This document shows, in pieces, positions 8,581 to 60,579 of a stretch of 64,000 nt of DNA. Source of the DNA: Convolutriloba macropyga (Eukaryota). The first letter of the stretch is position 1. The number at the start of each line of letters is the position of its first letter. The DNA is taken from contig NC_134477.1 in the NCBI RefSeq assembly GCF_964194025.1, positions 49,600,001 to 49,664,000 on the forward strand, written 5' to 3'. Position numbers and translations under genes: made by a program. The notes beneath the pieces were generated by a model, which worked only from the letters and a program-made list of their open reading frames with translations, did not search any database and was not told the origin of the DNA.

Positions 8581-8800
8581 ATGTCGGGACAATTGATTTT
8601 GTTAGTTTTTATTTCTTATCAGTGCTTTGTTAATGATGGAAGCAAAGTTGGCATTGATGATTACGATTACAAGGGGGAAGGCTTCGTTGGTCGAATGAAA
8701 GACCCCGATCATCAAACGAGTGGGTATATTTGTACAGTAACTGCTCTGAACAAATTTTACGCAGCTACTACCCACCAGTGTGCAAAAAGTGGTTCGTCAT
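8581..8800 (+). CDS. Gene A exon 1: signal peptide and N-terminal part of a trypsin-like serine protease homologue (catalytic His position = Q)
   Basis: MSGQLILLVFISYQCFVNDG is signal-like. ICTVTALNKFYAATTHQC aligns with the S1 CGGxLIxxxWVLTAAHC motif. Phase-1 donor T|GTAAGC at 8801, the same phase as gene C exon 1. Confidence 0.8.
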
Positions 8801-9669
8801 GTAAGCAGAATTAAACAAATTTATTTGAACTAGAAGTAAATTCAAGACCAATTTTTATTCCCGTTTCGAGGTTTCAGCGCTAAAAATTGCTAAAAGATGT
8901 ATAAGTATTGCGGCAAATGCGGTGAGTGGTGAAACCGGTGAACACGATGAAATAGGTGAAAAGAAATCTTTCACCGCTAAATACCGCAAATCAACTGCAA
9001 AAATTTGCAGCTAAATGTCACAGCAAAAATTAGCTTGCTGTTGGATGCGGTGAAAAATTTTGATTCGTCCATTAAGCGCTGAAGCAATACATACTTTTTT
9101 CTCTGTAAAATCGCGATCAGAGTTACAACAAGAAGATTTTAGGAGTTCTTCAGTAATGATCCCGTATTTCAAAGCAGTAACTTAGAAAGTAGAAAGCCTA
9201 ACCAGGACGAGGTCCGCAACCCCAAAACAGGTGTACGCCAGACGCATTTAGGTGTCAGGACAGGGGGTCCGGACTCAACAAACCGAAAATCAAGAATGGG
9301 TTACACAAATCAGACTTCCATCACCCGTAGCCAGACTGAACGAACGCAAGCCAGACCCTGGTGCAGGCCAGACAGACTTTGATAACACTGGGCAAGGCCA
9401 AACTGAGCCAAGGCAGAGCCTGGGCCAGCGGACTTAAACACATAGAAGCACCACAATAAATTTAAAATTTTTGCTGCTTAATTTTGATTCCAAAAATCAG
9501 TTTAAACAATTTATTTTTTTTTAATCAGAAAACTGTAAATCTTTTTAGAAGAAAGCACTTTTTGGAAGCCGAATGGATGCGTCTGTTCATCAATCTACAA
9601 TGTGTTATTAGTTGCTAAAGAACAGTTGTTGCTTTCAAATAAGGTCAATTCAGCAGAGAATTATCGATT

Positions 9670-12600
9670 TTTTTGAAGTGGAGCGTTATTGTCTTGAACT
9701 GGAATTATGGGCGTTGATCAGTCAAAATAACTTGTGTGGACTCCAATTAGACAACTTTTCTGCTATTACTCTCCACCGAAGTCATAGAACTATAATGTTT
9801 TCTCAGTGGATCCAGTTTTTCATGATAGAGGATCCCGACGACAAGTTGCCAATGACTCGAATTATCTTGAATTAGCTCAAACTACCACAAAATAATCCGA
9901 CAACCGGTGTCTCAGACAAAATTTTAAATTGTCCTGCATGGTTGATACATATGCTATGTTTCAACCATGCAGGACAATTTAAAGTTTCGTGATAATAAAC
10001 CGAAAGTGCGACTATTCAAAACCGTGCAACTATGATCAGACCATTTAATTCCGTGATCAATTTGCTCAGACAAGCAGTTGGCACGATTCAAAATATCCCG
10101 AAATTGTTCGAAAATGCGCAATTTATGACAAACTATGATCCGATGGAACAGACTATGGAAGAATGTGCGACTATTATTCGACAATCCGGACTGTCCGAAT
10201 CTGTGCGACAGATCGGACAAAATTTTTATAACTGCTGATTTTTTTTCTCATTATAAGTTTTTTTCAGGTCGCATCTACCGTGAGAATTACTGAAAAAAGT
10301 AACTTGGAAAATTGTGAGAAAGCTTTTAAAGATAACTGAATAAAATTCAAACAAAAAACAACAATTTTTGTTTTAACTGTTTCAGTTTGTTAAAAAACAC
10401 TCAATGAATAACAACAAATATACCATAACTTAATATAACATTTCAAAATCTTCCGACCAATTTTGTCGATCTAAAAAAATCAAACATTTTTTGGGCAGGC
10501 GTTTGACAATACAGGTGTTGCTTGTGTTAACTTACAGCTCATGCTAATAATTCAGATAAGTCATCTGACCTATCTTCGTTAGTTAGCTTAAAGAATTTAA
10601 ACTTTGAAAAGTGTAAAGTTTTTTCAATTCAGAGGGACTATGAGGCAGAATTAATCAGAGTATAAATCGAATAAGCGCGTTTCCTCACTAATATTTGACA
10701 TAACAAGTCTATGACTCAAAGTGACGAAGCTAGGATTCAAATATGTGGTCTCATGATTCAACATAGCGAAATAAAACATGGTCCAAACAAAAGTATTCTA
10801 GACCATGTAAATAACATCTGGAGGTACTTCAAATCACACCTTAAAACTCTATTCATATACCCACATTTTTCAACCCGGGCTCCACCAAAACTTTTTCTGG
10901 ACTGTGGGTTTGAATTTTTTACAGACCACTTTCTCCACTCCATGTCCGATAGGACCATACCTGTTTTGGTTTGCACACCTCATCCTGGGAGTTTGACTTG
11001 AAAATACTACAACTGGTCTGAAATTCGTGAACAGAGATACCTCATTCACCATCTCATGATCTAGAAATCCCGAGTCGAATTCATCTTTTAACTGTCAACA
11101 ATAGTCTTTCCCATGAAGCTGATCGAACTTCGAACGTTCAAAAAATGCCAGTTTTCAGAATATTGATGTGGTCATATTAATGTCCATGATTTTTTCTGAT
11201 ATTTCAATTTCGTCCGATCTTTTCAACAAGTTTTAAATTTGAAAGTTGAACTTCTCACTAGTTTTTTTGCGTTTGCTTATTTCAATTTTCAGAGACACGT
11301 TATAAATATAGGTTGGGCGACTCTAACTAGGGACATTGCGAGAAACCTTTAAAAGATAACTGTTTAAAATTCAAACGAAAAAAATAAAAAATTTTTTGTT
11401 TTAACTTTTAGATTGTTGAAATTCCTCAAACACTCAATGAATAACAACAAAACTGAATATACAATTTCAAAATCTTCTGACCAGTTTTGTCCATCTAATA
11501 AAAAACTCAATCTTTTTGTCAGAATTTTGGCAATATAGGTGTTGCTTGTGTTAGCTTATCGCTCAAGCTGATAAGTCATCTGACCTATCTTTCTCAGTTA
11601 GCTCAGAAAATTGAAATTTTGAAAACTAAAAAGTTTTTAAATTTCAGCGGGACTCTGAGGCAGTATTTATCAGAGTATGAATCGAATAAGCGTGTATTTT
11701 TTCCTGAGAATTGACATAACAAGTATATGATTCAAATTGACGGCGCGACAATTCAATTAAGTGGTTTCATGATTCAACATAGCGCGCTTATGATTCGAAA
11801 TAATCTTTGGTCCAAAAAAGTATTCCAGACCATGCAAATAACATCTGGGGGCTAACCAATTCCATACCCTAAAATTCTATTCATATACCCACCACTTCAC
11901 TCCGGGTTCTTCCAATGCTTTTTCTGGACTGTGAGTTTGAATTTTTTACAGACCGTTTTGTCCACTCCAAGTCCAATAGGACCATACTTGTTTTGGTTTG
12001 CAGATCTCGTCTTGGGAGTTTGCGATGAAACCCAACAACTGTTCTGAAAAAGGATACCTCTAATTCAGCATCTCATGCTCTAGATATCTTACGCGGAATT
12101 GATCTGTCAACTATCAACAATAGTCTCTCTCATTGAGCTGATTTAAACGAACTTTGAACGTTCAGAAAATGCCCAGCTTTTTTAATGTAATGCCAACCGT
12201 ATTTAAGACAAGCGTGATCTGATAGAACAGACAATGGAAGAATTTGCGACTATTATTTGACAATCCGGACTGTCCGAATCTGTGCGACAGATCGGACAAA
12301 GTTTTTACAACTGCTGAATTCTTTTCCATTATAAGTCTTTTCAGGTCCCATCTACCGGTAATACTCCCCTCTATTGATAATTATTTAAAAAAGTAATTTG
12401 GAATTTGTGAGAAAACTTGTAAAGATAACTGATTAAAATTCAAGCAAAATATAACAACTTTTGTTTTTTTTTTAGTTTGTTAAAAAACACTCTAAATAGC
12501 TTGTGCGGACTCCAATTAGCCAAATTCCCTGCAATTACTCTCCACTAAAAATATAGAACTATAATGTTTTCTAAGCGGATCCAGCTTTTCATGCTAGAGG

Positions 12601-15600
12601 ATCCCGACGAAAAATTTTCCATGACTCGAATTATCTTGAATTAGCGCAAACTACCACGAATTAATCCAACCAATGGTGTTCATGTTTAAGCAATGCAGGA
12701 CAATTTTATAAACCGAAAGTGCGACGATTCGCAACCGTGCAAATATGATCAGACCATTTAATTCAGACAAAAAATGTCCGTTATCAATTTGCTCAGACAA
12801 CCAGTTGGCACGATTCAAACTATCCCGAAGTTTTTCGAAAATGTGAAATTTAAGACAAACATGATCCGACGGAACATACAATGGAAGAATTTGCGACTAC
12901 TATTCGACAATCCGGACTGTCCGAATCTATGCGACAGATCGGACAAAATTTATAACTGCTGAATTTTTTTCTCATTATAAGTTTTTTTCAGGTCGCATCT
13001 ACGGTGAGAATTACTGAAAAAAGTAACTTGCAAAATTGTGAGAAAGCTTTTAAAGATAACTGAATGAAATTCAAACAAAAAACAACAATTTTCGTTTTAA
13101 CTTTTTTAGTTTGTTAAAAAACACTCAATGAATAACAACAAATATACCATAACTTAATATAACATTTCAAATTCTTCTGACCAATTTTGCCGATCTAATA
13201 AAAAAATCAAGGATTTTTTGGGGAGGCGTTTGACAATACAGGTGTTGCTTGTGTTAACTTACAGCTCATGCTAATAAGTCAGATAAGTCATCTGACCTAT
13301 CTTCCTTAGTTAGCTTAAAGAATTTAAACTTTGAGAAGTGTAGAGTTTTTTGAATTCAGAGGGACTATGAGGCAGAATTTATCAGAGTATAAATCGATTA
13401 AGCCCGTTTCCTCACTAATATTTGAAATAACGAGTTTATGACTCAAAGTGATGAGGCTAGGAATCAAATATGTGGTCTCGTGATTCAACATAGCGCGCTT
13501 ATGATTCGAAGTAATGTATGGTCCAAAAGTATTCCGGACCATATAATTAACATCTGGGGTGCATTTTTCAGCCCGGGCTCTACCAAAACTTTTTCCGGAC
13601 TGTGAGTTTAAATTTTTTACAGACCGTATTGTCCACTCCATGTCCAATAGGACCATAACTGTTTTGGTTTGCAGATCTCATCTTGGGAGTTTGCGATGAA
13701 ACCCAACAACTGTTCTGAAAAAGGATACCTCTAATTCAGCATCTCATGCTCTAGATATCCTACGCGGAATTGATCTGTCAACTATCAACAATAGTCTCTC
13801 TCATTGAGCTGATTTAATCGAACTTTGAACGTTCAAAAAATGCCCAGCTTTTTTAATGTAATGCCAACCGTTTTTTGTAATTAATTTAAGACAAGCGTGA
13901 TCTGATAGAACAGACAATGGAAGAATTTGCGACTATTATTTGACAATCCGGACTGTCCGAATCTGTGCGACAGATCGGACAAAGTTTTTACAACTGCTGA
14001 ATTTTTTTTTCATTATAAGTCTTTTCAGGTCCCATCTACCGGTAATACTCCCCTCTACTGATAATTATTTAAAAAAGTAATTTGGAATTTGTGAGAAAAC
14101 TTGTAAAGATAACTGATTAAAATTCAAGCAAAATATAACAACTTTTGTTTTACTTTTTTTTAGTTTGTTAAAAAACACTCTAAATAGCTTGTGCGGACTC
14201 CAATTAGCCAAATTCCCTGCAATTACTCTCCACTAAAAATATAGAACTATAATGTTTTCTAAGCGGATCCAGCTTTTCATGCTAGAGGATCCCGACGAAA
14301 AATTTTCCATGACTCGAATTATCTTGAATTAGCGCAAACTACCACGAATTAATCCAACCAATGGTGTTCATGTTTAAGCAATGCAGGACAATTTTATAAA
14401 CCGAAAGTGCGACGATTCGAAACCGTGCAAATATGATCAGACCATTTAATTCAGACAAAAAATGTCCGTTATCAATTTGCTCAGACAACCAGTTGGCACG
14501 ATTCAGACTATCCCGAAGTTTTTTGAAAATGTGAAATTTAAGACAAACATGATCCGACGGAACATACAATGGAAGAATTTGCGACTACTATTCGACAATC
14601 CGGACTGTCCGAATCTGTGCGACAGATCGGACAAAATTTATAACTGCTGAATTTTCTTCTCATTATAAGTTTTTTTCAGGTCGCATCTACGGTGAGAATT
14701 ACTGAAAAAAGTAACTTGCAAAATTGTGAGAAAGCTTTTAAAGATAACTGAATGAAATTCAAACAAAAAACAACAATTTTCGTTTTAACTTTTTTAGTTT
14801 GTTAAAAAACACTCAATGAATAACAACAAATATACCATAACTTAATATAACATTTCAAATTCTTCTGACCAATTTTGCCGATCTAATAAAAAAATCAAGG
14901 ATTTTTTGGGGAGGCGTTTGACAATACAGGTGTTGCTTGTGTTAACTTACAGCTCATGCTAATAAGTCAGATAAGTCATCTGACCTATCTTCCTTAGTTA
15001 GCTTAAAGAATTTAAACTTTGAGAAGTGTAAAGTTTTTTGAATTCAGAGGGACTATGAGGCAGAATTTATCAGAGTATAAATCGATTAAGCCCGTTTCCT
15101 CACTAATATTTGAAATAACGAGTTTATGACTCAAAGTGATGAGGCTAGGAATCAAATATGTGGTCTCGTGATTCAACATAGCGCGCTTATGATTCGAAGT
15201 AATGTATGGTCCAAAAGTATTCCGGACCATATAATTAACATCTGGGGTGCATTTTTCAGCCCGGGCTCTACCAAAACTTTTTCCGGACTGTGAGTTTAAA
15301 TTTTTTACAGACCGTATTGTCCACTCCATGTCCAATAGGACCATAACTGTTTTGGTTTGCAGATCTCATCTTGGGAGTTTGCGATGAAACCCAACAACTG
15401 TTCTGAAAAAGGATACCTCTAATTCAGCATCTCATGCTCTAGATATCCTACGCGGAATTGATCTGTCAACTATCAACAATAGTCTCTCTCATTGAGCTGA
15501 TTTAATCGAACTTTGAACGTTCAAAAAATGCCCAGCTTTTTTAATGTAATGCCAACCGTTTTTTGTAATTAATTTAAGACAAGCGTGATCTGATAGAACA

Positions 15601-18600
15601 GACAATGGAAGAATTTGCGACTATTATTTGACAATCCGGACTGTCCGAATCTGTGCGACAGATCGGACAAAGTTTTTACAACTGCTGAATTTTTTTTTCA
15701 TTATAAGTCTTTTCAGGTCCCATCTACCGGTAATACTCCCCTCTACTGATAATTATTTAAAAAAGTAATTTGGAATTTGTGAGAAAACTTGTAAAGATAA
15801 CTGATTAAAATTCAAGCAAAATATAACAACTTTTGTTTTACTTTTTTTTAGTTTGTTAAAAAACACTCTAAATAGCTTGTGCGGACTCCAATTAGCCAAA
15901 TTCCCTGCAATTACTCTCCACTAAAAATATAGAACTATAATGTTTTCTAAGCGGATCCAGCTTTTCATGCTAGAGGATCCCGACGAAAAATTTTCCATGA
16001 CTCGAATTATCTTGAATTAGCGCAAACTACCACGAATTAATCCAACCAATGGTGTTCATGTTTAAGCAATGCAGGATAATTTTATAAACCGAAAGTGCGA
16101 CGATTCGAAACCGTGCAAATATGATCAGACCATTTAATTCAGACAAAAAATGTCCGTTATCAATTTGCTCAGACAACCAGTTGGCACGATTCAGACTATC
16201 CCGAAGTTTTTTGAAAATGTGAAATTTAAGACAAACATGATCCGACGGAACATACAATGGAAGAATTTGCGACTACTATTCGACAATCCGGACTGTCCGA
16301 ATCTGTGCGACAGATCGGACAAAATTTATAACTGCTGAATTTTCTTCTCATTATAAGTTTTTTTCAGGTCGCATCTACCGTGAGAATTACTGAAAAAAGT
16401 AACTTGGAAAATTGTGAGAAAGCTTTTAAAGATAACTGAATGAAATTCAAACGAAAAACAACAATTTTCGTTTTAACTTTTTTAGTTTGTTAAAAAACAC
16501 TCAATGATTAACATTAAATATACCATAACTTAATATAACATTTCAAATTCTTCTGACCAATTTTGCCGATCTAATAAAAAAATCAAGGATTTTTTGGGCA
16601 GGCGTTTGACAATACAGGTGTTGCTTGTGTTAACTTACAGCTCATGCTAATAAGTCAGATAAGTCATCTGACCTATCTTCCTTAGTTAGCTTAAAGAATT
16701 TAAACTTTGAGAAGTGTAACGTTTTTTGAATTCAGAGGGACTATGAGGCAGAATTTATCAGAGTATAAATCGATTAAGCCCGTTTCCTCACTAATATTTG
16801 AAATAACGAGTTTATGACTCAAAGTGATGAGGCTAGGAATCAAATATGTGGTCTCGTGATTCAACATAGCGCGCTTATGATTCGAAGTAATGTATGGTCC
16901 AAAAGTATTCCAGACCATATAATTAACATCTGGGGTGCATTTTTCAGCCCGGGCTCTACCAAAACTTTTTCCGGACTGTGAGTTTAAATTTTTTACAGAC
17001 CGTTTTGTCCACTCCATGTCCAATAGGACCATACCTGTTTTGGTTTGCAGATCTCATCTTGGGAGTTTGCGATGAAACCCAACAACTGTTCTGAAAAAAG
17101 ATACCTCTAATTCAGCATCTCATGCTCAAGATATCTTAAGCGGAATTGATCTGTCAACTATCAACAATAGTCTCTCTCATTGAGCTGATTTAATCAAACT
17201 TTGAACGTTCAGAAAATGCCCAGCTTTTTTTAATGTAATGCCAACCGTTTTTTGTAATTAATTTAAGACAAGCGTGATCTGATAGAACAGACAATGGAAG
17301 AATTTGCGACTATTATTTGACAATCCGGACTGTCCGAATCTGTGCGACAGATCGAACAAAGTTTTTACAACTGCTGATTTTTTTTCTCATTATAAGTCTT
17401 TTCAGGTCCCATCTACCGGCAATACTCCCCTCTACTGATAATTATTGAAAAAAGTAATTTGGAATTTGTGAGAAAACTTGTAAAGATAACTGATTAAAAT
17501 TCAAGCAAAATATAACAACTTTTGTTTTACTTTTTTTAGTTTGTTAAAAAACACTCTAAATAGCTTGTGCGGACTCCAATTAGCCAAATTCCCTGCAATT
17601 ACTCTCCACTAAAAATATAGAACTATAATGTTTTCTCAGCGGATCCAGCTTTTCATGCTAGAGGATACCGACGAAAAATTTTCCATGACTCGAATTATCT
17701 TGAATTAGCGCAAACTACCACGAATTAATCCAACCAATGGTGTTCATGTTTAAACAATGCAGGACCATTTTATAAACCGAAAGTGCGACGATTCGAAACC
17801 GTGCAACTATGATCAGACCATTTAATTCAGACAAAAAATGTCCGATATCAATTTGCTCAGACAAGCAGTTGACACGATTCAAACTATCCCGAAGTTTTTC
17901 GAAAATGTGAAATTTAAGACAAACATGATCCGACGGAACATACAATGGAAGAATTTGCGACAACTATTCGACAATCCGGACTGTCCGAATCTGTGCGACA
18001 GATCGGACAAAATTTATAACTGCTGAATTTTTTTCTCATTATAAGTTTTTTTCAGGTCGTATCTACCGTGAGAATTACTGAAAAAAGTAACTTGGAAAAT
18101 TGTGAGAAAGCTTTTAAAGATAACTGAATGAAATTCAAACGAAAAACGACAATTTTTGTTTTAACTTTTTTAGTTTGTTAAAAAACACTCAATGAATAAC
18201 AACAAATATACCATAACTTAATATAACATTTCAAATTCTTCTGACCAATTTTGCCGATCTAATAAAAAAATCAAGGATTTTTTGGGCAGGCGTTTGACAA
18301 TACAGGTGTTGCTTGTGTTAACTTACAGCTCATGCTAATAAGTCAGATAAGTCATCTGACCTATCTTCCTTAGTTAGCTTAAAGAATTTAAACTTTGAGA
18401 AGTGTAAAGTTTTTTGAATTCAGAGGGACTATGAGGCAGAATTTATCAGAGTATAAATCGAATAAGCCCGTTTCCTCACTAATATTTGAAATAACGAGTT
18501 TATGACTCAAAGTGATGAGGCTAGGAATCAAATATGTGGTCTCGTGATTCAACATAGCGCGCTTATGATTCGAAGTAATGTATGGTCCAAAAGTATTCCA

Positions 18601-19092
18601 GACCATATAATTAACATCTGGGGTGCATTTTTCAGCCCGGGCTCTACCAAAACTTTTTCCGGACTGTGAGTTTAAATTTTTTACAGACCGTTTTGTCCAC
18701 TCCATGTCCAATAGGACCATACCTGTTTTGGTTTGCAGATCTCATCCTGGGAGTTTGCTATGAAAATAAAACAACTGGTCTGAAACTCGTGAAGAGGGAT
18801 ACATCTCATTCACCATCTCATGCTCTGGAGATCTCAAGCGGAATTGATCTATCAACTGTCAACCATAGTCTCTACCTTGAAGCTGATTTAATCGAACTTC
18901 GAACGTTCAAAAAAAAGCCAATTTTCAGAATAATGATGTGGTCATATTAATGCCCATGCTTTTTCCCCGATTAATGCAATTTTTTCCGATGTTTTCAACA
19001 CGTTTTAAGTTTGAAAGTTGAACTTTTCACTAATTTTTAAAACGTTCGCTTATTTCAACTTTCAGAGATACGTTAAAAATATAGGTTGGGCG
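9670..19092. repeat. Higher-order tandem array in gene A intron 1: four near-identical 1688-bp units (~11950-18750) flanked by diverged partial copies
   Basis: Identical ORFs recur at 12651/14339/16027/17715 and 13324/15012/16700/18388 (period 1688). Each unit has two copies of a GGAAGAATTTGCGACTA..TGTCCGAATCTGTGCGACAGATCGGACA sub-block. 18750-19092 matches 10990-11321. Confidence 0.97.
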
Positions 19093-19176
19093 ACCCAGAT
19101 AGAGTGGCTCAGATAACCTGGTATTCTTTGAGAACTATCGTGATGATTCAAAGATTAAAGTCCGATTTTCTGCTAG

Positions 19177-19294
19177 TGACTTTTGCGTATAGTCACGAAA
19201 ACTTGATCAAAACTATATTGCACGAATTTTGTTATCCGGCACTCTATATACCAATATCTGGCACTGCAGTAACCTGCGATTTGGAAACTTTCAA
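19177..19294 (+). CDS. Gene A candidate exon 2 (phase 1->2)
   Basis: Acceptor TTTTCTGCTAG| and strong donor AA|GTGAGT. Open in the frame required by exon 1: (L)TFAYSHENLIKTILHEFCYPALYIPISGTAVTCDLETF(K). The acceptor choice is uncertain because the frame is open back to ~19077. Confidence 0.45.
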
Positions 19295-19800
19295 GTGAGT
19301 GTCGCAACTGATTATTCATTATTCTATCTGTGGGAAGTGTTTTTTGAGTTGATTTTGTCAGATCAATCAGTCAACACGTGAAATTAATGTGAAAAGAACA
19401 AAAACAAGAAAATCACGTTAATAGAAATAATACAAAAGATGCATGAATAAGTAACGAAAATTCAACTAAAAGGTCCAAATTTAGCTACTATACGATAGGT
19501 TTTAAAGTAAGACATATTGAGTTTTTTCAGCCGCGACAAAACAAGCCCAAGCGTCAGTTCTCTGCAAACACAACTATAGTGCAACTGCGCCGCTGTCTGA
19601 TTATATCCCTTATACAACCAATTACGACAAAGAAAATCGGAAGGATGACTTCGCAATCCTTAAAAACCAAAAACCAGTATGGGATGGGTGCAGCAATTTC
19701 ACGGGAATCAATTTATGCTCGGATAATAAGCAGGGACAAACAAACATACACACACATCCACATACATACACAAACTCATATACACACAACACACACACAC

Positions 19801-20281
19801 CCCGGGTCGAATATTTCCGCCCAAAAAGATGTAAGAATGGGGCTGCAATTGGATATTTTCTTAGGAAAATGCAGCTCAAAACTCTTACATCTTTTTGGGC
19901 TGCAATGGTCGTCTGCCAATGGGGGGGGGGGTTAAAATGATGTAAGAGTAAGGCGGTAATAGATAAATTGTCCCCTAACTCTTACATCATTTTGCCCCCT
20001 TGACAGACCAAAAAGATCTAAGAGTGGGGGGTTAATATACCTTTTACCCACTCACTCTTACATGATTCCCCACCCCTCCTTAGCCCATTGAAGCCCAAAA
20101 GATGCAAGAGTTTTGAGCTGCAATTTCCTCAAACGTCCTCCCATTGCAACCCCACTCTTACATCATTGTATTCCTCAGATCAAATTACTCTTCACTCTTA
20201 CATCATTTTCCCCGCTAACACAAATTACCCTTCCAATCTTACAAGAAAATGGGGTGTTTTTAGGCAGGTTGTTCGACCCGG
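19801..20281. mobile_element. MITE/foldback element with CC(C)GGGTCGAA termini inserted in a CA-rich tract
   Basis: Left CCCGGGTCGAATA, right TGTTCGACCCGG. Internal inverted arms 19820-19910 vs 20084-20164; repeated GATGTAAGA/TCTTACATC motifs. Confidence 0.75.
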
Positions 20282-21139
20282 AACACTAACATCACACACA
20301 TACAACCCATGAATTGAACAAAAAAGACAATACTGCAATTTTTACTGGATTATATGTTCCTACTGCGACAACCCATACCATCCGCGCCAATTCCATGCCA
20401 GATCTTGGATTTCCACATCCCATTTCCAAACAGTACCATTTTTAAAATCATGAAATATCTTGCGTGATTTTTTCCATCTGGGTTTTTTTCAAAAGTCCAA
20501 TTTCATTCAAATTGGAGCCAAAATCAAGCAAAGCTATAACTTTCATATCAGACCCACAAAATGGTTTCTCAGATCTTGGCAAGATCTTGAAATGATCTGG
20601 CGTGATTTTCTAAGTTACAGGGGCTACCATCCTGGAAAAATAGAATATAAGGAAGATCAGTCAGATAACAAGCACATCCATTTTCATGTTTCAGCATGAC
20701 TGTTGGTGTTTTTTGTAGATTTTGTTTTCTCAGCCCAAATACATTGTTTTTTGTAGATCTTTTGTTTCTCCCAATATATTACTCCAGTTCTGAATCAAAT
20801 GGTTGCAAATGATTTAGCCAATGCAATTTTTTTGTGCTGCTTCTCTATAAAATTAAAATGGCCGTGTCAATAAACTCTTCAAGAACAAAAACAATAATGT
20901 TTTGTCCTGACCAATTGTCTACTTTTTGCTTAATTTGCTTCAACTTGAACGTTGTATCAAAATTTACCAAATTACCGACGGCATTTCCAAACTCAATAAG
21001 TTAGATTTGTTCTGTAAACAAAGAAACATATAAATCTTTGGAGCCAGCATGACCGCTTTTAGCCGAAAGGAGTCCACTCTATTTTTTTAGCTTTCTAAAT
21101 TTATTTTGATTTGACTTGGATTTTTGAATTTGATTTCAG

Positions 21140-21180
21140 ATCACCAGGTTCTCTTGTCATTATTATCAACGGGAGTATAA
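21140..21180 (+). CDS. Gene A candidate exon 3 (41 nt, phase 2->1)
   Basis: TTTGATTTCAG| ... AA|GTGAGT; reads SPGSLVIIINGSI in the required frame. Confidence 0.45.
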
Positions 21181-21524
21181 GTGAGTAAAATCGTTGTTTT
21201 TACGGCAATGAGCTTTTCATCAGTTGCGATATCAATGAATTAACCGTGCAAATTTTCCGTGCTCACTTTTATAATTTAAATTAATAATTAAGTCATCTAA
21301 CACTTTTAAGCGAGTTCTGAAACTGCCCTCAATACTTTAAGCAAAAAATTGATAATTAGATGAAAACCCGTAAAATCTTTCCATGATGCTTTTGATATCA
21401 CTTTTGCTTGAGGCCGTGTCTGCCTCTGGTACATGTCAAACCGTCCACACAGATGTTTTTGGATTTCTGACTCCTTTCCCAATTTATCCATGACCAAACC
21501 TAACCATTTTTATTGTCATGCCAG

Positions 21525-21556
21525 TGGTCTGCAATTTTAGTTTTGTTTGGATCACG
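21525..21556 (+). CDS. Gene A candidate exon 4 (32 nt, phase 1->0)
   Basis: Branch CCTAAC, acceptor GTCATGCCAG|, donor ACG|GTGAGT. Encodes VCNFSFVWIT, matching gene C ECNFTGIEIC, and restores phase 0 for the next exon. Confidence 0.55.
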
Positions 21557-22165
21557 GTGAGTGAGTGCTCATAAGTTATAATAGCGTGGAGTTGTTGAAG
21601 TAAAAACAGAAAAATTTCACAAGTTTTTTTTATAATTAATGGTAGCAAGTATTTATTGGCATTTTTTGATGGCTGGAGTTTTTTATTACTGGCATTTTAC
21701 AGCACTCTAGCAGAACAATAAAGACTAATCTCTTGTTCCGTTGGCCGGGATCATGAACTGAGGCTGTGAATTTTATGCGCTAAAGGTTGTGAATAAAAAT
21801 GTGCTAAAGGTAGAGAAATTGGGCAAGTATTTAAAACTGCAATAAAATCTTCTAAAGTGTGGAAATTGTTTGGTGAGAAATGCGCAGCCAGGTTCAGCAA
21901 CAAGCGGAATAAAATCCAGCGGATAAGTTTTTCATATTTATCTAATTCTCGTTGGCAAAAATTATTCGAGAAATGCTTTGAAAAATCATCACGCTGAGTG
22001 AACAATTAAAATATTTCGTCAAAATTATTTTTTAGCGGTTGTCCGCGCATTTCTTACACCTTTTTCAAAAAAATTTTCAACCCGTTTTTTTTTTCAACAA
22101 AATCCGCATGATTTTAATTAGGGTAATTCTGACAAATACTTTTTGTGTGTCTGTTACGTGAACAG

Positions 22166-22391
22166 GGAGTGATCAAAGTATTCGACTATCCAGGTGATGG
22201 TCCACAATTCTACTTCCGCAAATATGAATTACCTCTGAAAAACAATTGCAGGTTCAGAAATATATCTTCCCTCCTTTGTTTCAAAAACGACGAGAACCAT
22301 TACGTGAACACAAAAAATTCGAATTACAAAGGTGCACCTGTGGTCAGGTACACGAAGGACGATAATGGAACCGAGTCTACATGCCTTATTG
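22166..22391 (+). CDS. Gene A exon (phase 0->1): C-terminal half of the trypsin-like domain, catalytic Ser motif degenerate (NYKGAPVV)
   Basis: Acceptor GAACAG|GGA, donor ATTG|GTAAAT. Roughly one-third identical to gene C exon 48235-48019 (GV..D.P..F.K.EL.L...C..LLCF.ND..G.PVV...K..NGT.S.CL). Confidence 0.85.
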
Positions 22392-31530: not shown

Positions 31531-31670
31531 TCGGACCATTCCTTTTGTTTTTTAATTTGCTATTTTACCGACCGAATCCCATTACTAGCTCAATCTGGTT
31601 GGCCATTTAACTGTCATTATTGCTTTTTTTGGTAAAAACAATATTATCACCTCAATCTATTTATAGTGAT

Positions 31671-32604: not shown

Positions 32605-32927
32605 GTATTTTGGTCAACAACATCGGCAGCGAATTGTACGCAATCAATTTTCTTCACTCCGAGTACTGGCAATGGATTATTAACACCACTGGCGGAAATG
32701 TGTCAGATTCCGATACGTTCGACAGTGGTTCGATTCCAGGTGGGCGCTCAAGTGTGACTATAACAGCAACATCTATCATACCACCATCATCTCTTCGGAC
32801 TGGGTTATTGGAAAGTAGTCTTAGTAGTTGCAATGAAAACTCTGAAACCGTAATTATTTTGCTTTCTTTGATGTTGTTTATATGTTCCATCTGTTCATCA
32901 TTCAATTGCTGTGTTATTATCCGATAG
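32605..32927 (+). CDS. Gene A last exon: end of S1 domain, Ser/Thr stalk, hydrophobic C-terminal anchor
   Basis: Acceptor CCTTTTAG|GT (phase 1). GILVNNIGSELYAINFLHSEYWQWII is homologous to the last exons of genes C and D. Ends VIILLSLMLFICSICSSFNCCVIIR*; AATAAA at 32949-32954. The six-exon model totals 960 nt (319 aa). Confidence 0.85.
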
Positions 32928-48018: not shown

Positions 48019-48235
48019 CCATCAAACAGTGAGAAGTAGTCCCGTTAGAATTTTTCACGATCTTCACCACAGGCGATCCTTCCGCTTTCTGTGACTGTAT
48101 TTGCCATCTCATGTCATTTTCAAAACAAAGCAGCTTGGCGCTTTTGTGGACGCACTTTGAACTCAGTTTAAGTTCGTGTTTCGAAAAAATTAGCGATAGC
48201 TTTGCATGCGGGTTGTCGTACGCTTGATACACACC
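48019..48235 (-). CDS. Gene C exon 4 (phase 0->1): GDSGGP-equivalent region degenerate (KAEGSPVV)
   Basis: Acceptor CTAACAG|GGT, donor ATGG|GTACAT; 217 nt; homologous to gene A 22166-22391. Confidence 0.88.
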
Positions 48236-51054: not shown

Positions 51055-51247
51055 CTGCTGATTTTCATCGGGGCATATCTCAATCCCGGTGAAGTTGCAT
51101 TCATTTTCATAATCAGACTCTTTGAACATTAGTAATGCCAAATCGTCATCGCGATGAACAACGTTGAAATCGGGTGGATATGGTATGTACTGACCAAACT
51201 GTCTCCTTCGGTAGCTCCTTTCACCGGTCGGTCTCAAACAATAGTAT
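51055..51247 (-). CDS. Gene C exon 3 (phase 2->0): contains the S1 Asp motif DDLALLMF
   Basis: Acceptor TCAATCAG|A, donor CAG|GTGATC; 193 nt. YIPYPPDFN..DDLALLMF..IEICP parallels HPxYN..NDIALLKL..PICLP. Confidence 0.85.
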
Positions 51248-52384
51248 CTGATTGATGTAAAATTCCACGCTAAAATATCATCAGCATGTAGAGCTTGTAT
51301 TCCCAGTAGAACTTGTACAACTGAATTTTACAAAATTTTTGACATTCTAAAGAAATTAAAATTCTAAATTTTTTTTTTGTAAAAATATATTGCTACAGAT
51401 TTTCAACTTTTTGTATCAAGTTTTTGCAATACTTTTCCAACATCTCGAAGAGTGTAAGTTTGCCCCAGTCGAGGTATCATTGCTAAAAAATGCTGAATAA
51501 TCCAAGAATTGTGGTTTTTAGCGCTGATTGCTGTAAAAGCTGTGAATTTAAATTTTTCAAAGCCAGAAAGGTCAAATCTTACAAAAAATATGTGTTGTTA
51601 GATAAAACCTAGTTATATTTTTGTAGCAGCGGTTGTTTTCATCAGTCACATTTTCATTTTTATGGCTCAAATATTAAATTTTCACACCATCATTTTGACA
51701 AAAAATTAACCACGCAAATTTGTCATCGGTGGAGCAGTCTCCAATAATATAAGAGCTGAAGAAAACGTTGGTAGTTCAAACGCGGTTGAAGTACTTATTT
51801 TCTCTAAAGAAGCAAAAATTTAAATGCTCACACAAAGTTTGTCTAACAAAAACTGGTAAATAAAGTTATAATTAACTAAACTTCTTTACAGTACAAGAAA
51901 ATTATTTGCAATGCACAAGAAGGGTGAAGAAACGTGAAGAAACATTCTAATTCAACAGGCTACAATTATATTATTCCTACAATATCTTTTCCATCACTAT
52001 TTAGCTGTCAGTTTTCTTCCCTTCTCGCCAGTTCTTTTTATTATTGTTAGCGTTATATCTGGATAGATTCGAAATGTGAAATTAATGATTCCTCACGTGA
52101 CCGATATCTTGATAATTCTAGCTAATTAGCAACAACAGACCAGATTGAGTTCTTATGATCACATTTGTCTCCATCTAAAAAAAGTGATGTTTGGACTCAA
52201 TAACAGATATTAGTTAGCAATCTAAAAAGCATCGAATCAAAAGCAAAAGTAAAGCATAAAAGGTTGTACAGCTTGGAGGTGCTATAATTTCAATAATTTA
52301 AGTTAAGTGGACTTAGTTCCACTGTAAAAACATTATGCGTAATGAGTAGAAGCAATCTGAACTAAAAAGCTGGAATTACTTAAA

Positions 52385-52719
52385 ACACACCATAATCTTT
52401 TGAGGAGAATAGAAGACGTGATATCTTAAAAGTAAAAATATATTTTTTTGAATAATTTTGCTATGAAAAGGATAACATTTGAAAAATAAAACTGAAATCA
52501 AAACTTTATATTACAAAACTAATCATTTTTCAAAATTACGGTGAAATAAAAAACACAATAATCTTTTGAGGAGAATAGAAGACGTGATATCTTAGAAGTA
52601 AAAATATTTTGTTTTGAATAATTTTGCTATGAAAAGGATAACATTTGAAAAATAAAACTGAAATCAAAACTTTATATTACAAAACTAATCATTTTTCAAA
52701 ATTACGGTGAAATAAAAAA
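52385..52719. repeat. Tandem duplication, 166-bp period
   Basis: ATAATCTTTTGAGGAGAATAGAAGACGTG at 52392 and 52558; near-identical copies. Confidence 0.95.
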
Positions 52720-55700
52720 TTACAATCATAGTAATACTGCGAAAAGTAAAAAATTACAATGAAAAATTACTGTGAAAATTAATTTTTGTAGGATGCAGGG
52801 AATTTTCATGGAGAAACTGCGAGTAAGATAGATAATTTAGGTCAAGTTGGACAAGCTAATTATGGGTTTGAAGTAAGCCTTCTTTCTGAAAAGGCTATTG
52901 TTTGGAAGGCGCCAGAGAGGGGAGTTGAGTGATATATCTTAAACAAACAAATTAAAGAACAAAAGCATTTTGATCTGTCGATATATTTCGTTTACAGCAA
53001 AGTTGCATTTGTGCACCCGGCCAAAGTCGAAATGATTGATTTAAATTTAGAAGAAAACCAGAGAGCGAACATTTGAAGTGAACTAGATATTATGGACAGA
53101 ATTGGAATTTCAATTGGAAGTAGATGTAAGTGTGATTTCAATATTGCAAATTAATGGGCAACCCCAAACCTGGTACTCCCCAACTCTTTAAGTTATTTTC
53201 AGCATTCGACTCTGAAAATTTGTGGAGATGTTCCCCTAGTGATTGTCCATGTATAATAGGGATGTGCGGCCGGTTACACCATTTCGCTCTGAGTTAGTTA
53301 AGTAGAGTTTTGTTGACTTAAAGTAAATAAAAAGGAAAATTTATAAGTTTTTCCATATACCCTGGTTGTAAAAAAGTTGTCCGACCAACCCGGGATGGGA
53401 AGGAGTTATTGGTTGATAACCAGTCAATGATGGTAGGAACCCCTAATGGTCCACTATTGCAAGAATAATTTTCAGGCGAATCCGACCAACCAATCTCATG
53501 TTATTAACACCGGAAATAGTGTGATTTAAAGGTTTTTAGGTATGTTACTGTGAAATATGAGTGTTTGAGTAAGAAATAATGGGATTAATCAGTCGTAACG
53601 TAATGCACGTATGAGTTAAGGTTTTTTGCGTGATCTTGGGAAGGGTTTAGGATGTAAATTGGCGATTTTTGAGTATATTGGTAACTATCACAGGAATGTA
53701 TTTAGCACCTAAATAGAAATTGTTTTTTCTCAAAAAATTGTAGTCTGATTGACCTGAAAATTGGAGGATAGACTAATTTGGGTACAATGAATCCGATTTT
53801 GAGTTCAGATCTGACCCCACACCAACCTGCACGGAACAAGCGCACGCCGGTGCTGCTGAACGTAAAATTTGAATTGCTGGTGGAGTATTGGTAGCAGCCT
53901 TATGATTTTTGGAGGGTTAGTGAAACTTTTCAAGGGATTTCGATTGGTTACATTTTAAACCCCAGATTTTGACCGGAAGTTGGTGCTGAGGGACGACCCG
54001 AGTGCCGAAAACAGGCAATTGGCCTTTTTGAGTTGCCGAATGACTTTGAAATGGTATTAAAATGATACCCTGAGACAGTTAGTGACAAAAAATAACCACC
54101 CCGGTCAATTTTGACGAATTCAGATTTTTCGGGTTTCGGCTCCCACGACTCGTTAAAAACATTTAAATTGCAAACGACTCGCAACTGCTGGTCCGTTGGT
54201 CATGAAACTTGGCAGGCAAGTTAGTGGCACCCTGTAGTTACTAAAAAATTTTACCCGAAGACATTTTGACCACTACTTGGCAAGTTATTGAGTTCTGAAA
54301 TTTGAGTTCATCCGGTGGGCTTTTAGGAATATTAGACTTTTCGGCAGCTTTTAACTGAGGAATTGTATGAAATGATTTCCAAGTTGGAAATTACAAATAA
54401 CCTTTGGTTTAGGGTTGATTTTATTTATTTATTCAACACATGATTTTTGACAGTTATTGATTGCAGCTAGTTAATTTGATAGCGGAAATAGAGGAATAAG
54501 AACTTTTCAGAGTAACGTTCAACGTTTACTAGGCAAACATTGATTGACATGTCATATACGAAATAAAGTGGATTGGGTTTAATTACATATGAGTCCAAAG
54601 GTCGTTTACTTAAGACAAGGAGAAAATTGAAAAATGGTTGGTAGCAGTTGAATGACAGAGCATAAATTGATTTTAGTTTGTTTGCATAGCAAACAAAGCC
54701 CTCCTACAGAATGTGATAATTTCAGGTGTAAGTTGTATTGTTTACTTAAGAGAATAAGGTTTGTTTGCTTAAGATAAGAGCGTATTGGTTGAGTATAAAT
54801 TGAGGTGACACGGTGAGAGAGAGAGAGGGGGAGTGTCGAAACGATTTGCTGAGACACAGCAGAAGTGGGACACAGAAAAGATTTTGGCACAAGCGAGAAA
54901 AGTAGTTGGTTTAGTGGGACTAAACTCTAAAAGATAGTGTGAAAATCAGGGAAGAGATTGAGAGTGAGATTGAACTCTGGAAGTTTGTAATTGCAAGACC
55001 AGTTGGGGATACTGTGAGCGTTTTTGATTTCGTTCATTTGTGAAGTGAACCACGGATATTGACATTATTATTGTAATTACCATTATAAATTGTCTTGAAT
55101 TTGTCTTTTCCAATGATGTGCAAGTAATTGTCTTACCTTCATTATCCATATAACTAGAATTGATATTACGAGCACCATTGTGGATTTACTTATTTCAAGG
55201 CAATCTAATTTGCAACAGCATACAAGAGTGGAAGAGGGGAAATCGCAGAGTAACAAAGTAACATTGCTTCACCAATTCAAAACTTTTGGTTTATTTTATT
55301 TGATCGATCTTCTGGGCGACAGAGTCCCCTCACTGTTGAGCCTAGCAGAAATTCAGAAGACGACAATTTTTAAAAAAAATACAATTAATACTCTGAAAAG
55401 TTTGTGAAAATACTCTTTTACTTTTACTTCAGAATAACATGTGTCATTATTTTTCATCTGACTAAAGTTTTCCTTCGCGAACATAATTAGAATTTCTCCG
55501 AAATTTCAATTATGAAGAGCAAAAAACGCAAAGAAAAGTTTTCGATCAATTTGTGCACAATTTTGAATTCCGCTCGTCTCGTTTATTTGATAGCAAGGTT
55601 CCACAAAATTTGAGAAATTGGGTTTTCTGTTGGAGATATCTGCTGGATAGATATTTATGAGCTGTCTACCAGAACAGCGGATATCCATCAACCCTAAAAT

Positions 55701-56810
55701 AGTTTTTTTTTCGGCAGCAGAATAACTCCTAAATTATTGAGCTTGGGTTTTGCTTGTTAAGGCATTCGTGCTTTAAATGTCTGTAAATGTCTGTAAACAA
55801 TTTTTCATCCATCAGCAGATCTGCAAATGCATGTTATTTGAATTTTCAAAAATTGATTTCTCCAAAGCACACTCAAGCTCACAATCACAAAGTTTAAAGA
55901 AACCAGTCAAGTAATAGCTGCCGAAAGTTTTACATTCATATTTGTATTAAAGATGTGGTGGCAATGATATGTTTGTTTTCCTGCATTTATAGATATTAAA
56001 GGTAGATAGAAAAGCACTCTTACGTTTAGAGGTTAACATACAGATGACACCAAAGAAAAAACGCAAAAAAACATGAAAATAACAAAATACCGTTACATGA
56101 TGAAAAGTTTTATTGAATAACATGATCTAACTCATCTTTTTATGTTGATTGTTAATGGTTGGGAATTTTTTGACATAAATATTCAGCACCTTCTTAATCA
56201 AAAACGCCGAAGAAATGCATCGTGCAAAATTTTTGTTTCTTCCGCTTTTAACGTAAGAAAACCCTCGGTATGTATGGTTTTAAACGTAAGAAATCGTTGG
56301 ATGATCAGATCAGTCTTAGATAGACGAAAAAGACAAAAGGTTTCATACTCATTCATACTCAAATCTTTTGGTATGCTCGCTTTTAAACGAAGCAATTGGT
56401 TCAGTATCTTCTGTTTAAAATTTAGTAAATCTTTACAACCACAAAAAATAACTTCTTATATAATTGTTTTCTGATTTTTTTTCTACCAATACTCCTTGAA
56501 AGTTGAAACGATTTTCCATCAAAGTTCAACAAGTCTGTTACATTTTAGATTCTGAATAAGAACAAAACTCATTTTTAACTTGTTTTGTCAACAAACTAAG
56601 GAAGATGTTTCATTATATTTGCTCATTTGTTCAAAATAATTTATCCTAGAAATGTTTGACTACAATATACACTATTGATTTGAAATTTTGTAATAAAAAC
56701 TGAAGGTTTCTGACATTTGAAACAAAACATAAAGACTGTCTTCTACAATCGAAAGAAAAAAATGTGAAGGCTTTCGTTGTTTTTGTCTCACTTGAATCGA
56801 ACGTACTCAC

Positions 56811-56892
56811 GAGTTTTCTAGGTTTGACGATGACGATTTCTGGACTAGGGCTGTTTGAGCAAACAGAATACTGCAGATACCAGCAGAAAGTG
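56811..56892 (-). CDS. Gene C exon 2 (82 nt, phase 1->2)
   Basis: 66-nt intron after exon 1; acceptor ATTTAAAG|, donor TC|GTGAGT. Open frame ALSAGICSILFAQTALVQKSSSSNLENS bridges the phases of exons 1 and 3. Confidence 0.7.
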
Positions 56893-56958
56893 CTTTAAAT
56901 AACTATTTTAAAATCTCATCGAGATCAAGAATGGGTCTGAGATTACAGTCGATCTTAC

Positions 56959-57160
56959 CGGCCTTTTCAGCGCATGAACGCGTTGTCAAACCAAAGCTTC
57001 GTGACAATCTGGCGGCTGCACAAACTGGCAAGTCAGTCATTGACACCCCATAGCGTAATTCTGCAGCTATTGTATCTTCGGGTACAATATATCCGTCGTT
57101 GAATGATATTTTACGCAACATTAAACAGAATATAAAAGCTATTACGTCTTTGAAAATCAT
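56959..57160 (-). CDS. Gene C exon 1: signal peptide and N-terminal trypsin-like region (catalytic His position = S)
   Basis: MIFKDVIAFIFCLMLRKISFNDG, then IVPE..AELRYGVSM..VCAAARLSRSFGLTTRSC (cf. IVGG..GEFPYQVSL..CGGxLIxxxWVLTAAHC). Donor G|GTAAGA, phase 1. Five exons total 1008 nt = 335 aa + stop. Confidence 0.85.
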
Positions 57161-58510: not shown

Positions 58511-58976
58511 NNNNNNNNNNNNNNNNNNNNNNNNNNNNNNNNNNNNNNNNNNNNNNNNNNNNNNNNNNNNNNNNNNNNNNNNNNNNNNNNNNNNNNNNNN
58601 NNNNNNNNNNNNNNNNNNNNNNNNNNNNNNNNNNNNNNNNNNNNNNNNNNNNNNNNNNNNNNNNNNNNNNNNNNNNNNNNNNNNNNNNNNNNNNNNNNNN
58701 NNNNNNNNNNNNNNNNNNNNNNNNNNNNNNNNNNNNNNNNNNNNNNNNNNNNNNNNNNNNNNNNNNNNNNNNNNNNNNNNNNNNNNNNNNNNNNNNNNNN
58801 NNNNNNNNNNNNNNNNNNNNNNNNNNNNNNNNNNNNNNNNNNNNNNNNNNNNNNNNNNNNNNNNNNNNNNNNNNNNNNNNNNNNNNNNNNNNNNNNNNNN
58901 NNNNNNNNNNNNNNNNNNNNNNNNNNNNNNNNNNNNNNNNNNNNNNNNNNNNNNNNNNNNNNNNNNNNNNNNNNNN
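58511..58976. other. Assembly gap (466 N)
   Basis: Run of N. Confidence 1.
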
Positions 58977-59504
58977 CATTGAAGGTTCTTGTTCAATCTT
59001 TATCAATTATAGCTTTATAAATATTAGCTATACCAATGTGTAAACCAAACTTTGATACAAAGTGGTGAGACGTGCCTGATTTTAGCATATCTTAGGAATT
59101 AGATGCCTGTTGCTAATATGATGAAGCAAGAAAATTTCTCGTTGAATAAATTATTCTGCCAAGATAACGCAAAGAGATTTTCTTGAGGAATTCTTAACAT
59201 ATCTTCCCATCTACATTTCAATTATTTTGCCTAACTCCTTATTTTTCGTACCAAAAACTTCGTAAGCTCACCAAATAGGTGTGAACTGGTAACAGAAACT
59301 AACTGAAAAGAAGAACGCAATAAGGAGTATCAAGTCAGTAATTGAGGAGTAAAATGACGCCAGTGAAGTTTTTCAAATTAATCGTAGTAGACAATAACAA
59401 GCTGGGATAAAAATAAAGAAACTAATGAAGACCTTGTTAGCTTTTTTGGGCTATCAGAAAACCGTTCCATATTCAACAGGAAACAGTCCCAACCTGTTTA
59501 GCAC

Positions 59505-59536
59505 ACTGCCCTCCCTACAAGAGTAGGGAGGGCAGT
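59505..59536. repeat. Perfect 14-bp GC-rich hairpin
   Basis: ACTGCCCTCCCTAC-AAGA-GTAGGGAGGGCAGT. Confidence 0.9.
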
Positions 59537-59629
59537 ATCATCGTTACGAGTTTCAACTTGATTTTTAGTAGTTGTGTATAAGATAACCAGTTTTGAGCAA
59601 TCAAGGAAAGATCTTTTATTCTAGACGTT

Positions 59630-60025
59630 TTTCTCTGATCCAATCATTTTCCATGTTTTGTGTTCTGATCAGATCATTTTTCATTTCTGGTTAGACCATT
59701 TTACGTGCTTTTATCACACCAATTTCCATGCTTTCTTTTACGATAAGCCATTTTTTCTATGCTTTGCCTTCACATCAGAGAATTTTCCATTTGATCATAA
59801 CGATCCTTTGATCATAATATTTTCCATGCCTTTCCCTATCATCAGACCATTGTCCAAATTTTTTTCCCCTCTGATCAGACAATTTTTCATGCGCTGCCCT
59901 CTGATCAGATTTTTTTCGTTGTTTTTCCTACCTGATAACACCAATTTCCAAACTTTGTCTTCTGATTGGACCATTTTCTATGCCTTGACCTCAACTCAGC
60001 CAGATGCATTTGCCCTCGTGTGATC
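59630..60025. repeat. Degenerate CTGATCAGA.CATTTT..CATGC minisatellite
   Basis: Repeated TCTGATCAGA / TTTTCCATGC motifs at ~30-nt spacing. Confidence 0.65.
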
Positions 60026-60157
60026 TTTTTTGGGATACACTTAAACACCCCCCCCCCCCTCCCCTAATTTGGTCCTATCAGTGTTAGCCTTTGGTCTGCA
60101 AACTCAGCTTGAGAAGATACAAAATGTCTCAAAAAACGAGTCCTAATTGATTGTAAA

Positions 60158-60579
60158 TTAAATACATAAACAAAACATTAAAATAGAAACTATGGAACAA
60201 ACCAGCAAGATAAACAATAAAACGATCAAAATCCACAAAACTATATCCAATTTGATCTCAACTTCCTCCAGAAAATCATCCGTTATCGCAATATTGTCCA
60301 TATCATTGGTTTCAACGGAGAGCATTAGCGTTGATTCAGAATTATTGGAAAGACAATTTTGGCTATTGTTTTCTCCATTTGTCGGCGTTAATGTTGTGGT
60401 TTCCAAATTTGTTATTATATTTGAAAAATTTTGAGAGCCCACCGGGTCTCGAAACCGGGTTTGTACGAGAGGACCTTGCGTGAGAGTCTTATATGTCATT
60501 TCCTTGAGCCATTCCCAGATGTCGTAGGCATGCAAGTTGATGACGTACACTTTTTTGTCCGTCACTTCAAACACAACTC
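60158..60579 (-). CDS. Gene D last exon (third paralog; upstream exons not found in the window): S1 C-terminus, long S/T/N stalk, terminal TM helix
   Basis: Acceptor TTTTTTCTACCAG|GA (phase 1). GVVFEVTDKKVYVINLHAYDIWEWL matches genes A and C. Ends IVLWILIVLLFILLVCSIVSILMFCLCI*. Confidence 0.88.

Follow-up and report, generated by a model that had tools for sequence, protein, structure and literature searches.

A tandem cluster of very divergent, putatively membrane-tethered serine protease homologues in the acoel Convolutriloba macropyga

The Locus and Its Genes

We analyzed a window of 64,000 nucleotides from Convolutriloba macropyga, an acoel that hosts Tetraselmis algae (chromosome OZ077308.1:49,600,001-49,664,000, such that a chromosome coordinate equals the window coordinate plus 49,600,000). 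A first-pass annotation, made from the letters of the window, had described three intact paralogs (here gene A, gene C and gene D), spliced from short open reading frames (ORFs) and encoding membrane-anchored, catalytically dead proteins of the trypsin fold. We find that these genes belong to a tandem cluster of at least four paralogs at ~49.54-49.66 Mb of the chromosome, comprising LOC142348636 (49.538-49.577 Mb, on the strand of gene A and 32 kb upstream of it), gene A, gene C, which is RefSeq LOC142348638 and is named "uncharacterized protein", and gene D. The genes have four exons across 14-39 kb and encode proteins of 315-341 amino acids (aa), gene D being represented by its last exon only. 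The gene models first proposed were partly wrong. The features of the window on which the analysis rests are as follows.

8357-8556, no strand: assembly gap (second N run), ending 25 nt upstream of the gene A ATG
8581-8800, plus strand: gene A exon 1, with the ATG, a predicted signal peptide (..CFVNDG), a Cys-x15-Cys "His loop" (..TTHQC) and a phase 1 donor GTAAGC; aligns to exon 1 of LOC142348636
19531-19733, plus strand: gene A exon 2, YIPY..RKDDFAILKN (Asp102 motif) and C..NFTGINLC, followed by the non-canonical intron start GGACAA
22166-22391, plus strand: gene A exon 3, LLCF..YKGAPVV..NGTESTCLI, with Lys at the Ser195-equivalent position
32605-32927, plus strand: gene A exon 4, GILV..LYAINF..WQWI, Ser/Thr stalk, C-terminal hydrophobic anchor and stop codon
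43215-43528, minus strand: gene C exon 4 (isoform X3), GIVLEV..LYAINV..HKWI, Thr/Pro/acidic stalk, predicted transmembrane segment and 10-aa basic tail
48019-48235, minus strand: gene C exon 3, LLCF..AEGSPVV..NGTTSHCLM, with Glu at the Ser195-equivalent position
51055-51269, minus strand: gene C exon 2, acceptor corrected to 51269, YIPY..DDDLALL and CNFTGIEIC
56811-56892, minus strand: 82-nt "exon 2" of the first-pass gene C model, in no RefSeq isoform and with no counterpart in a paralog; probably spurious
56959-57160, minus strand: gene C exon 1, predicted signal peptide (..ISFNDG) and Cys-x15-Cys (..TTRSC)
58511-58976, no strand: assembly gap (N run) in the intergenic stretch that separates gene D (3' end) from gene C (start)
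60158-60579, minus strand: gene D last exon, GVVFEV..VYVINL..WEWL, long Asn/Thr/Ser stalk and C-terminal hydrophobic anchor without a tail

That the exons of genes A, C and D share these motifs, as had been noticed from the letters, is borne out by tblastn between the paralogs in the 64-kb window (E=4e-12, 3e-7, 1e-4 and 0.009), the best of these values belonging to the LLCF..PVV..NGT exon. The sequence of the LOC142348638 locus is identical to the reverse complement of window positions 33215-64000, with zero mismatches. The N run at 58511-58976 is flanked by the gene D stop (60158) and the gene C ATG (57160) and is crossed by no proposed exon or frame, and the 5' end of gene A cannot be checked because the N run at 8357-8556 ends 25 nt upstream of its ATG. 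Hidden Markov models (HMMs) of the exons found no copies beyond the known ones in the window or in the locus sequences L001, L002 and L004-L007.

Gene Models and Splicing

Gene C can be reconstructed exactly. Its four exons (57160-56959, 51269-51055, 48235-48019 and 43528-43215) translate to the 315 aa of XP_075256168.1 (isoform X3), and all three isoforms (XP_075256165/166/168) were rebuilt without error from window coordinates; alternative acceptors at 43549 and 43600 yield X2 (322 aa, +7 aa) and X1 (339 aa, +24 aa). Among the gene C isoforms, X3 alone keeps the junction that is common to all paralogs. The X1 and X2 acceptors (window 43529-43600, minus strand) precede the conserved one by 72 and 21 nt and add 24 and 7 residues, respectively, within the predicted C-terminal barrel. 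X1 and X2 are probably splicing noise or non-folding variants, and the annotation of three isoforms suggests transcript support for the gene; the four read runs that cover the locus are DNA-like, with even depth and no splice joints.

An earlier model of gene C had five exons and a product of 335 aa. The four junctions that it proposed do splice in frame with GT..AG; the 82-nt exon at 56892-56811, behind a 66-nt intron, and the acceptor at 51247 were mistaken, the right acceptor being 51269. We rejected the five-exon model: the extra exon is absent from gene A, LOC142348636 and the three RefSeq isoforms, and it would widen the spacing between C58 and D102 (chymotrypsin numbering) in gene C from 47 to 67 residues.

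For gene A, no protein was found in the databases. Its four exons (8581-8800, 19531-19733, 22166-22391 and 32605-32927) encode 323 aa with no internal stop, and its exon-intron structure and splice phases are identical to those of LOC142348636 (XP_075256164.1, 341 aa), the coding sequence of which was rebuilt exactly from its locus sequence (L001). The two proteins are 59% identical overall and 62.5% identical in the ectodomain. We considered and discarded the possibility that they are orthologs from two species: both genes lie on one chromosome, 32 kb apart, and are tandem paralogs. Their synonymous divergence (dS) is ~1.0 and the ratio of nonsynonymous to synonymous divergence (dN/dS) is 0.28 overall and 0.23 in the ectodomain; both genes have therefore been under purifying selection since the duplication, contrary to the earlier description of the family as rapidly diverging.

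Uniform GT-AG splicing had also been claimed, and it holds for the four junctions first proposed for gene C; the second intron of gene A (19734-22165) begins GGACAA and reads GG...AG. The same intron opens with GGACA and closes with CAG in both gene A and LOC142348636 (L001 30197-43360), and the RefSeq protein of LOC142348636 is obtainable only via the GG..AG junction at this position. No shift of the boundaries of gene A intron 2 that preserves the mature sequence yields GT-AG, GC-AG or AT-AC, and the homologous intron of gene C starts with an ordinary GT. It looks like a non-canonical GG-AG intron retained across a dS of ~1. Literature searches for non-canonical acoel introns found nothing specific. 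An intron without a GT-AG, GC-AG or AT-AC option, in two paralogs of saturated synonymous divergence (dS ~1), may be of interest for the study of splicing.

Repeats lie in the first introns of gene A and gene C. Intron 1 of gene A holds a tandem array (window ~9900-18720) with a period of 1688 bp and at least four units, each carrying the same 110-aa ORF on the minus strand (13324, 15012, 16700 and 18388), which has no Pfam match. Intron 1 of gene C contains a very high-copy repeat (window 52800-55400), where each of the four DNA runs shows a word depth of thousands to >100,000 (10-90 in the flanks), and of which a copy at 77-80% identity occurs in a contig of a related genome (L002 15115-17775). 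In runs X2-X4, an alternative haplotype with ~3% differences extends across intron 1 and exon 1 of gene C (window 55970-57131) and includes seven single nucleotide polymorphisms in exon 1 (three nonsynonymous and four synonymous); these differences look like generally high heterozygosity and not like a property of the gene.

Predicted Topology

Every member has a signal-like hydrophobic stretch at the N-terminus and, towards the C-terminus, a Ser/Thr-rich stalk followed by a hydrophobic anchor. Kyte-Doolittle windows exceed 1.6 at the C-terminus of all four proteins; gene C is the only one whose N-terminal signal stretch exceeds this value as well. Between these elements lies an ectodomain of ~220 aa, in which eight cysteines are conserved in gene A, gene C and LOC142348636. 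Each protein carries three to six predicted N-glycosylation sequons, one of them (NGT) conserved, and the Ser+Thr content of the stalk is 16-42%. The C-terminal tails comprise 0-10 residues (0-1 in gene A, gene D and LOC142348636, and ten basic residues in gene C), and a Cys-Cys pair stands at the inner end of the C-terminal hydrophobic stretch. As judged by hydropathy, the proteins appear anchored at the C-terminus with little or no tail, as first proposed.

The same features bear on whether the anchor is a true transmembrane segment or whether the proteins, at least those of gene A, gene D and LOC142348636, are instead glycosylphosphatidylinositol (GPI)-anchored, shed or secreted, given that the hydrophobic segment in these three reaches the C-terminus behind small polar residues. 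A tail of 0-1 residue and the Ser/Asn/Cys-rich stretches directly before the hydrophobic end would fit a GPI signal, and GPI anchoring is known from prostasin and testisin, two S1 proteins tethered at the C-terminus; however, the hydrophobic stretches of 25-30 residues exceed usual GPI signals, the basic ten-residue tail of gene C is that of a typical stop-transfer anchor, and the Cys-Cys pairs suggest a palmitoylated transmembrane helix. We regard the GPI-anchored, shed or secreted form as the less probable one, though it deserves real weight.

Fold of the Ectodomain

The motifs of the family had been mapped from the letters onto the S1 (chymotrypsin/trypsin) fold. AlphaFold2 (AF2) was run on the ectodomain of gene C with an alignment of family sequences only, and the C-terminal barrel of the resulting model (residues 113-220, of moderate confidence, with a block-mean predicted local distance difference test (pLDDT) of 51-82) matches chymotrypsin-fold proteases only, in agreement with that reading. 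In Foldseek searches with this model against the PDB, the best 50 matches were all chymotrypsin-fold proteases (probability 0.93-1.0), and against Swiss-Prot models the matches, all over the C-terminal barrel, included the inactive PAMR1, PPAF2, Spl proteases and the inactive PRSS54; protein Z was also among the inactive structural matches. VIA gave Z of 8.8-9.9 at root-mean-square deviations of 2.5-3.5 A; for most S1A chains, the match ran from model residue 110 to 224 and took in the entire C-terminal barrel (chymotrypsin residues 120-245). The six-stranded beta-barrel and terminal helix that characterize the C-terminal half of the chymotrypsin fold are both present in the model.

Sequence comparisons add a signal for the N-terminal half. 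In a PDB profile search, the best match for this half was the trypsin Der p 3 (E=0.042), with granzyme A in third place, the ..TAAHC loop and NDIALIKL strand of Der p 3 falling in register with the Cys-x15-Cys and DDFAIL/DDLALL of the family. Aligned with hhalign to an S1 profile of Escherichia coli YdgD, the family scored 26.8, compared with 13.8 +/- 2.5 for 150 column shuffles, none of which reached 26.8; the YdgD profile is narrow, containing only orthologs of >=71% identity, and the match is limited to the His loop. Language-model (ESM) features placed the ectodomain with trypsin clusters (0.97 for the whole ectodomain and 0.92 for the C-terminal half), and 79-92% of the language-model matches were trypsin clusters; an ESM Atlas search with a 72-aa exon was uninformative. 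The spacings of the landmarks fit S1A as well (C58-D102 44-47 residues, P198-W237 41).

Several results weigh against this assignment. Searches for Pfam PF00089 and PF13365 found no match at E<=10 with LOC142348636, the LOC142348638 isoforms, the ectodomains or single exons, under conditions in which the control, E. coli YdgD, matched at 2e-10. The N-terminal barrel of the AF2 model is not resolved (pLDDT <35), and an earlier AF2 model, built from LOC142348636 and fragment rows, reached a pLDDT of 38 and gave an uninformative Foldseek search. Furthermore, hhalign detected no signal between the C-terminal half and YdgD, and PDB searches with half-profiles or single sequences returned noise only. 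The ectodomain might then be a lineage-specific, beta-rich domain unrelated to S1, with coincidental motif matches, as the missing Pfam match, PDB sequence matches of at best E=0.04, the poor N-terminal half of the model and template modeling scores of only 0.3-0.36 (normalized by full length) would allow. Yet a model built from family sequences alone matches chymotrypsin-fold proteins exclusively, over the whole barrel and at Z 9-10; independent sequence signals in the N-terminal half coincide with the His loop and the Asp102 strand, whose order and spacing are those of S1; and the language-model matches are dominated by trypsins. We consider an unrelated domain very improbable. The S1-fold reading is supported by the modeled C-terminal barrel with its Foldseek and VIA matches, the N-terminal alignment of the His loop and Asp102, and the language-model features, and we hold it with high confidence.

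Loss of Catalytic Residues

The Cys42-Cys58 spacing of the His loop is kept as Cys-x15-Cys in gene A, gene C and LOC142348636 and aligns with the C..TAAHC of Der p 3, granzyme A and YdgD. Read from motif and profile alignment, and not from residue-by-residue structural superposition, which is a further point against the overall reading, the catalytic triad positions are as follows.

His57: Ser in gene C, Gln in gene A, His in LOC142348636 (..STHHC..), not seen in the gene of the related genome; the residue before the second Cys
Asp102: Asp in gene C (DDLALLM) and in gene A and LOC142348636 (DDFAILK), not seen in the gene of the related genome; aligned with NDIALIKL of Der p 3
Ser195: Glu in gene C, Lys in gene A and LOC142348636, Ala in the gene of the related genome; read on the conserved G-x-P-V-V

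Asp194 and the GDSGG oxyanion motif are lost in every member, and in all of them the stretch from the signal peptide to the His loop lacks an IVGG-like activation motif. With Ser195 replaced in every member, the proteins appear catalytically dead, as the first-pass annotation had put it, and would be unable to cleave peptide bonds as serine proteases. LOC142348636 is the candidate for a member that remains a hydrolase with an unconventional nucleophile: it has ..STHHC.. and ..KDDFAIL.., that is, His57 and Asp102 are kept, together with Lys at position 195. Ser195, Gly193/Asp194 and the activation N-terminus are missing in every member, and the proteins of gene A and gene C also lack His57. Of the alternatives discussed here, residual hydrolase activity appears to us the most improbable.

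Extent of the Family and the Sister Genome

The predicted proteins of gene A and gene C are 29% identical over the ectodomain and 35-38% identical in the best exon, in line with the first estimate of about one-third. An exhaustive HMMER scan of the best exon against 1.84 billion representative proteins gave three matches, namely LOC142348636, one ORF of an ENA contig and one unrelated repeat protein, and a profile search with all exon pieces found no annotated proteins other than LOC142348636 and LOC142348638, both from C. macropyga. The statement that the family is not a named one therefore stands: RefSeq calls its members "uncharacterized", Pfam has no match and the protein scan found little else. 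It is a very divergent, unnamed family, observed to date in C. macropyga and one related genome only. The cluster genes are real and lineage-confined. The description of an expanded family was not borne out; we find the four genes of the cluster plus one further type in the sister genome. Literature searches for acoel pseudoproteases found nothing specific.

This sister genome (ENA assembly ERZ25071359) contains a contig collinear with the gene D region, with ~85% identity in the flanks and 96% within the last exon. A family member of a fifth type is present in this assembly too; its exons 3 and 4 are separated by 13 kb and show the same phase-1 junction, stalk and anchor. The last exon of gene D is open in C. 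macropyga; no upstream exons were found over the remaining 3.4 kb of the window or the next 3.2 kb outside it. In the sister genome, the corresponding exon (L006 10001-10500, equivalent to window 60158-60579) carries a TGG>TAG stop at the first anchor residue and three 1-nt deletions in the stalk, by which 14 stalk codons are re-read in another frame before the original frame is restored. The two copies differ by eight nonsynonymous and four synonymous changes.

These data raise the possibility that only LOC142348636 and LOC142348638 work, that gene A, gene D or both are unexpressed or decaying duplicates, and that the functional family is accordingly overstated. Several observations point that way: genes A and D are without an annotated protein, upstream exons of gene D are absent within 6.6 kb, its counterpart in the sister genome has the stop, the deletions and the substitutions just described, and the start of gene A adjoins an assembly gap. 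The missing annotations and the premature stop also count among the evidence against the explanation that we favor below. On the other side, gene A has four open exons, the phases of LOC142348636 and a dN/dS of 0.28, and the gene D exon is open here and conserved far above its flanks (96% versus 85%). Decay of one or both genes is, in our judgment, a minority view, albeit one to be taken seriously.

Maverick-like sequences occur in both genomes. At the left edge of the window (327-3763, minus strand), a Maverick/Polinton-like fragment consists of a run of ORFs of a type-B DNA polymerase of the protein-primed kind (Pfam DNA_pol_B_2, E=5e-7); in the sister genome (L005 7840-11740 / L002 1-2114), the insertion lies upstream of the family's exon 3, is Maverick-like and encodes both an rve integrase and a Peptidase_C5 protease of the adenovirus type.

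A Candidate Mode of Action

The explanation that we favor, and that we think somewhat more likely than not, is that the cluster comprises at least four paralogs of membrane-tethered, non-catalytic and very divergent S1A-like proteins. It builds on demonstrated gene structures, architecture, C-terminal barrel fold, serine loss and purifying selection. Each protein would consist of a signal peptide, an N-glycosylated ectodomain of ~220 aa, a Ser/Thr-rich stalk and a C-terminal hydrophobic anchor. The ectodomain would adopt a divergent S1A-like fold that kept the Cys42-Cys58 loop and the Asp102 motif and lost Ser195, GDSGG and IVGG, as well as His57 in genes A and C. At the cell surface or on the lumenal face of a membrane, such proteins may act as binding modules devoid of enzymatic function, with the degenerate substrate cleft as the binding site. 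Signaling of their own would be impossible, and they would therefore act as adhesion, decoy, cofactor or co-receptor molecules.

The first-pass annotation had presented the family as candidate receptors or recognition molecules; such a role is possible but unsupported. A specific version, in which the proteins would be acoel-specific surface molecules that recognize algal (Tetraselmis) or microbial ligands via the disabled cleft and act in symbiont uptake, sorting or tolerance, is speculative and in our estimation very unlikely.

Comparison with Known Serine Protease Homologues

With a predicted S1 fold and at least one triad residue replaced, the proteins fall among the non-catalytic serine protease homologues. 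Known S1A homologues of this kind, such as the inactive PRSS54, PAMR1, protein Z and the insect SPH/PPAF2, likewise combine the chymotrypsin fold with replaced catalytic residues, and they are among the best structural matches of the acoel model. They differ from the acoel family in that known S1A pseudoproteases are still detected by Pfam PF00089, and in that the majority are secreted proteins or have clip, CUB or EGF modules, whereas the acoel proteins have a bare domain, a mucin-like stalk and a C-terminal anchor. Six of the eight conserved cysteines of the acoel family are not obviously at standard S1A positions.

C-terminally tethered S1 proteases are also known, with gamma-tryptase being a type I transmembrane protein and prostasin and testisin being GPI-anchored. 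Like the acoel proteins, these have a signal peptide, a single S1 domain, a C-terminal hydrophobic anchor and almost no cytoplasmic tail, but they are catalytically active, their triad being intact and their activation site of the pro-peptide/IVGG type; in the acoel proteins, a Ser/Thr stalk stands between domain and membrane. Sequence searches of protein databases and PDB profiles revealed no link from the acoel family to these three proteases, and the family is too divergent for a tree with them. The SMIPP-S proteins of the scabies mite are multicopy dead S1 proteases that act as complement-binding decoys; they are secreted gut proteins of a parasite and number dozens of copies. They too are lineage-specific, multicopy, dead S1 paralogs with different triad substitutions in each copy, in contrast to which the acoel family has some four to five membrane-tethered copies in a free-living, photosymbiotic animal.

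The family thus represents an ordinary kind of pseudoprotease in an unnamed and very divergent form. According to the counts given for Tenebrio in one report (PMC11172050), 125 of 269 S1A genes carry triad substitutions, and dead homologues are very common in animals. The find is modest because dead S1 proteins are common, and its weight would grow only if expression or binding data were to tie the proteins to symbiosis, immunity or gamete recognition. What the analysis offers to the biology of C. macropyga is a fold and a likely mode of action for two RefSeq "uncharacterized" loci and their two unannotated neighbors. For the S1 family at large, it suggests that a trypsin-derived domain can drift past Pfam detection while under purifying selection.

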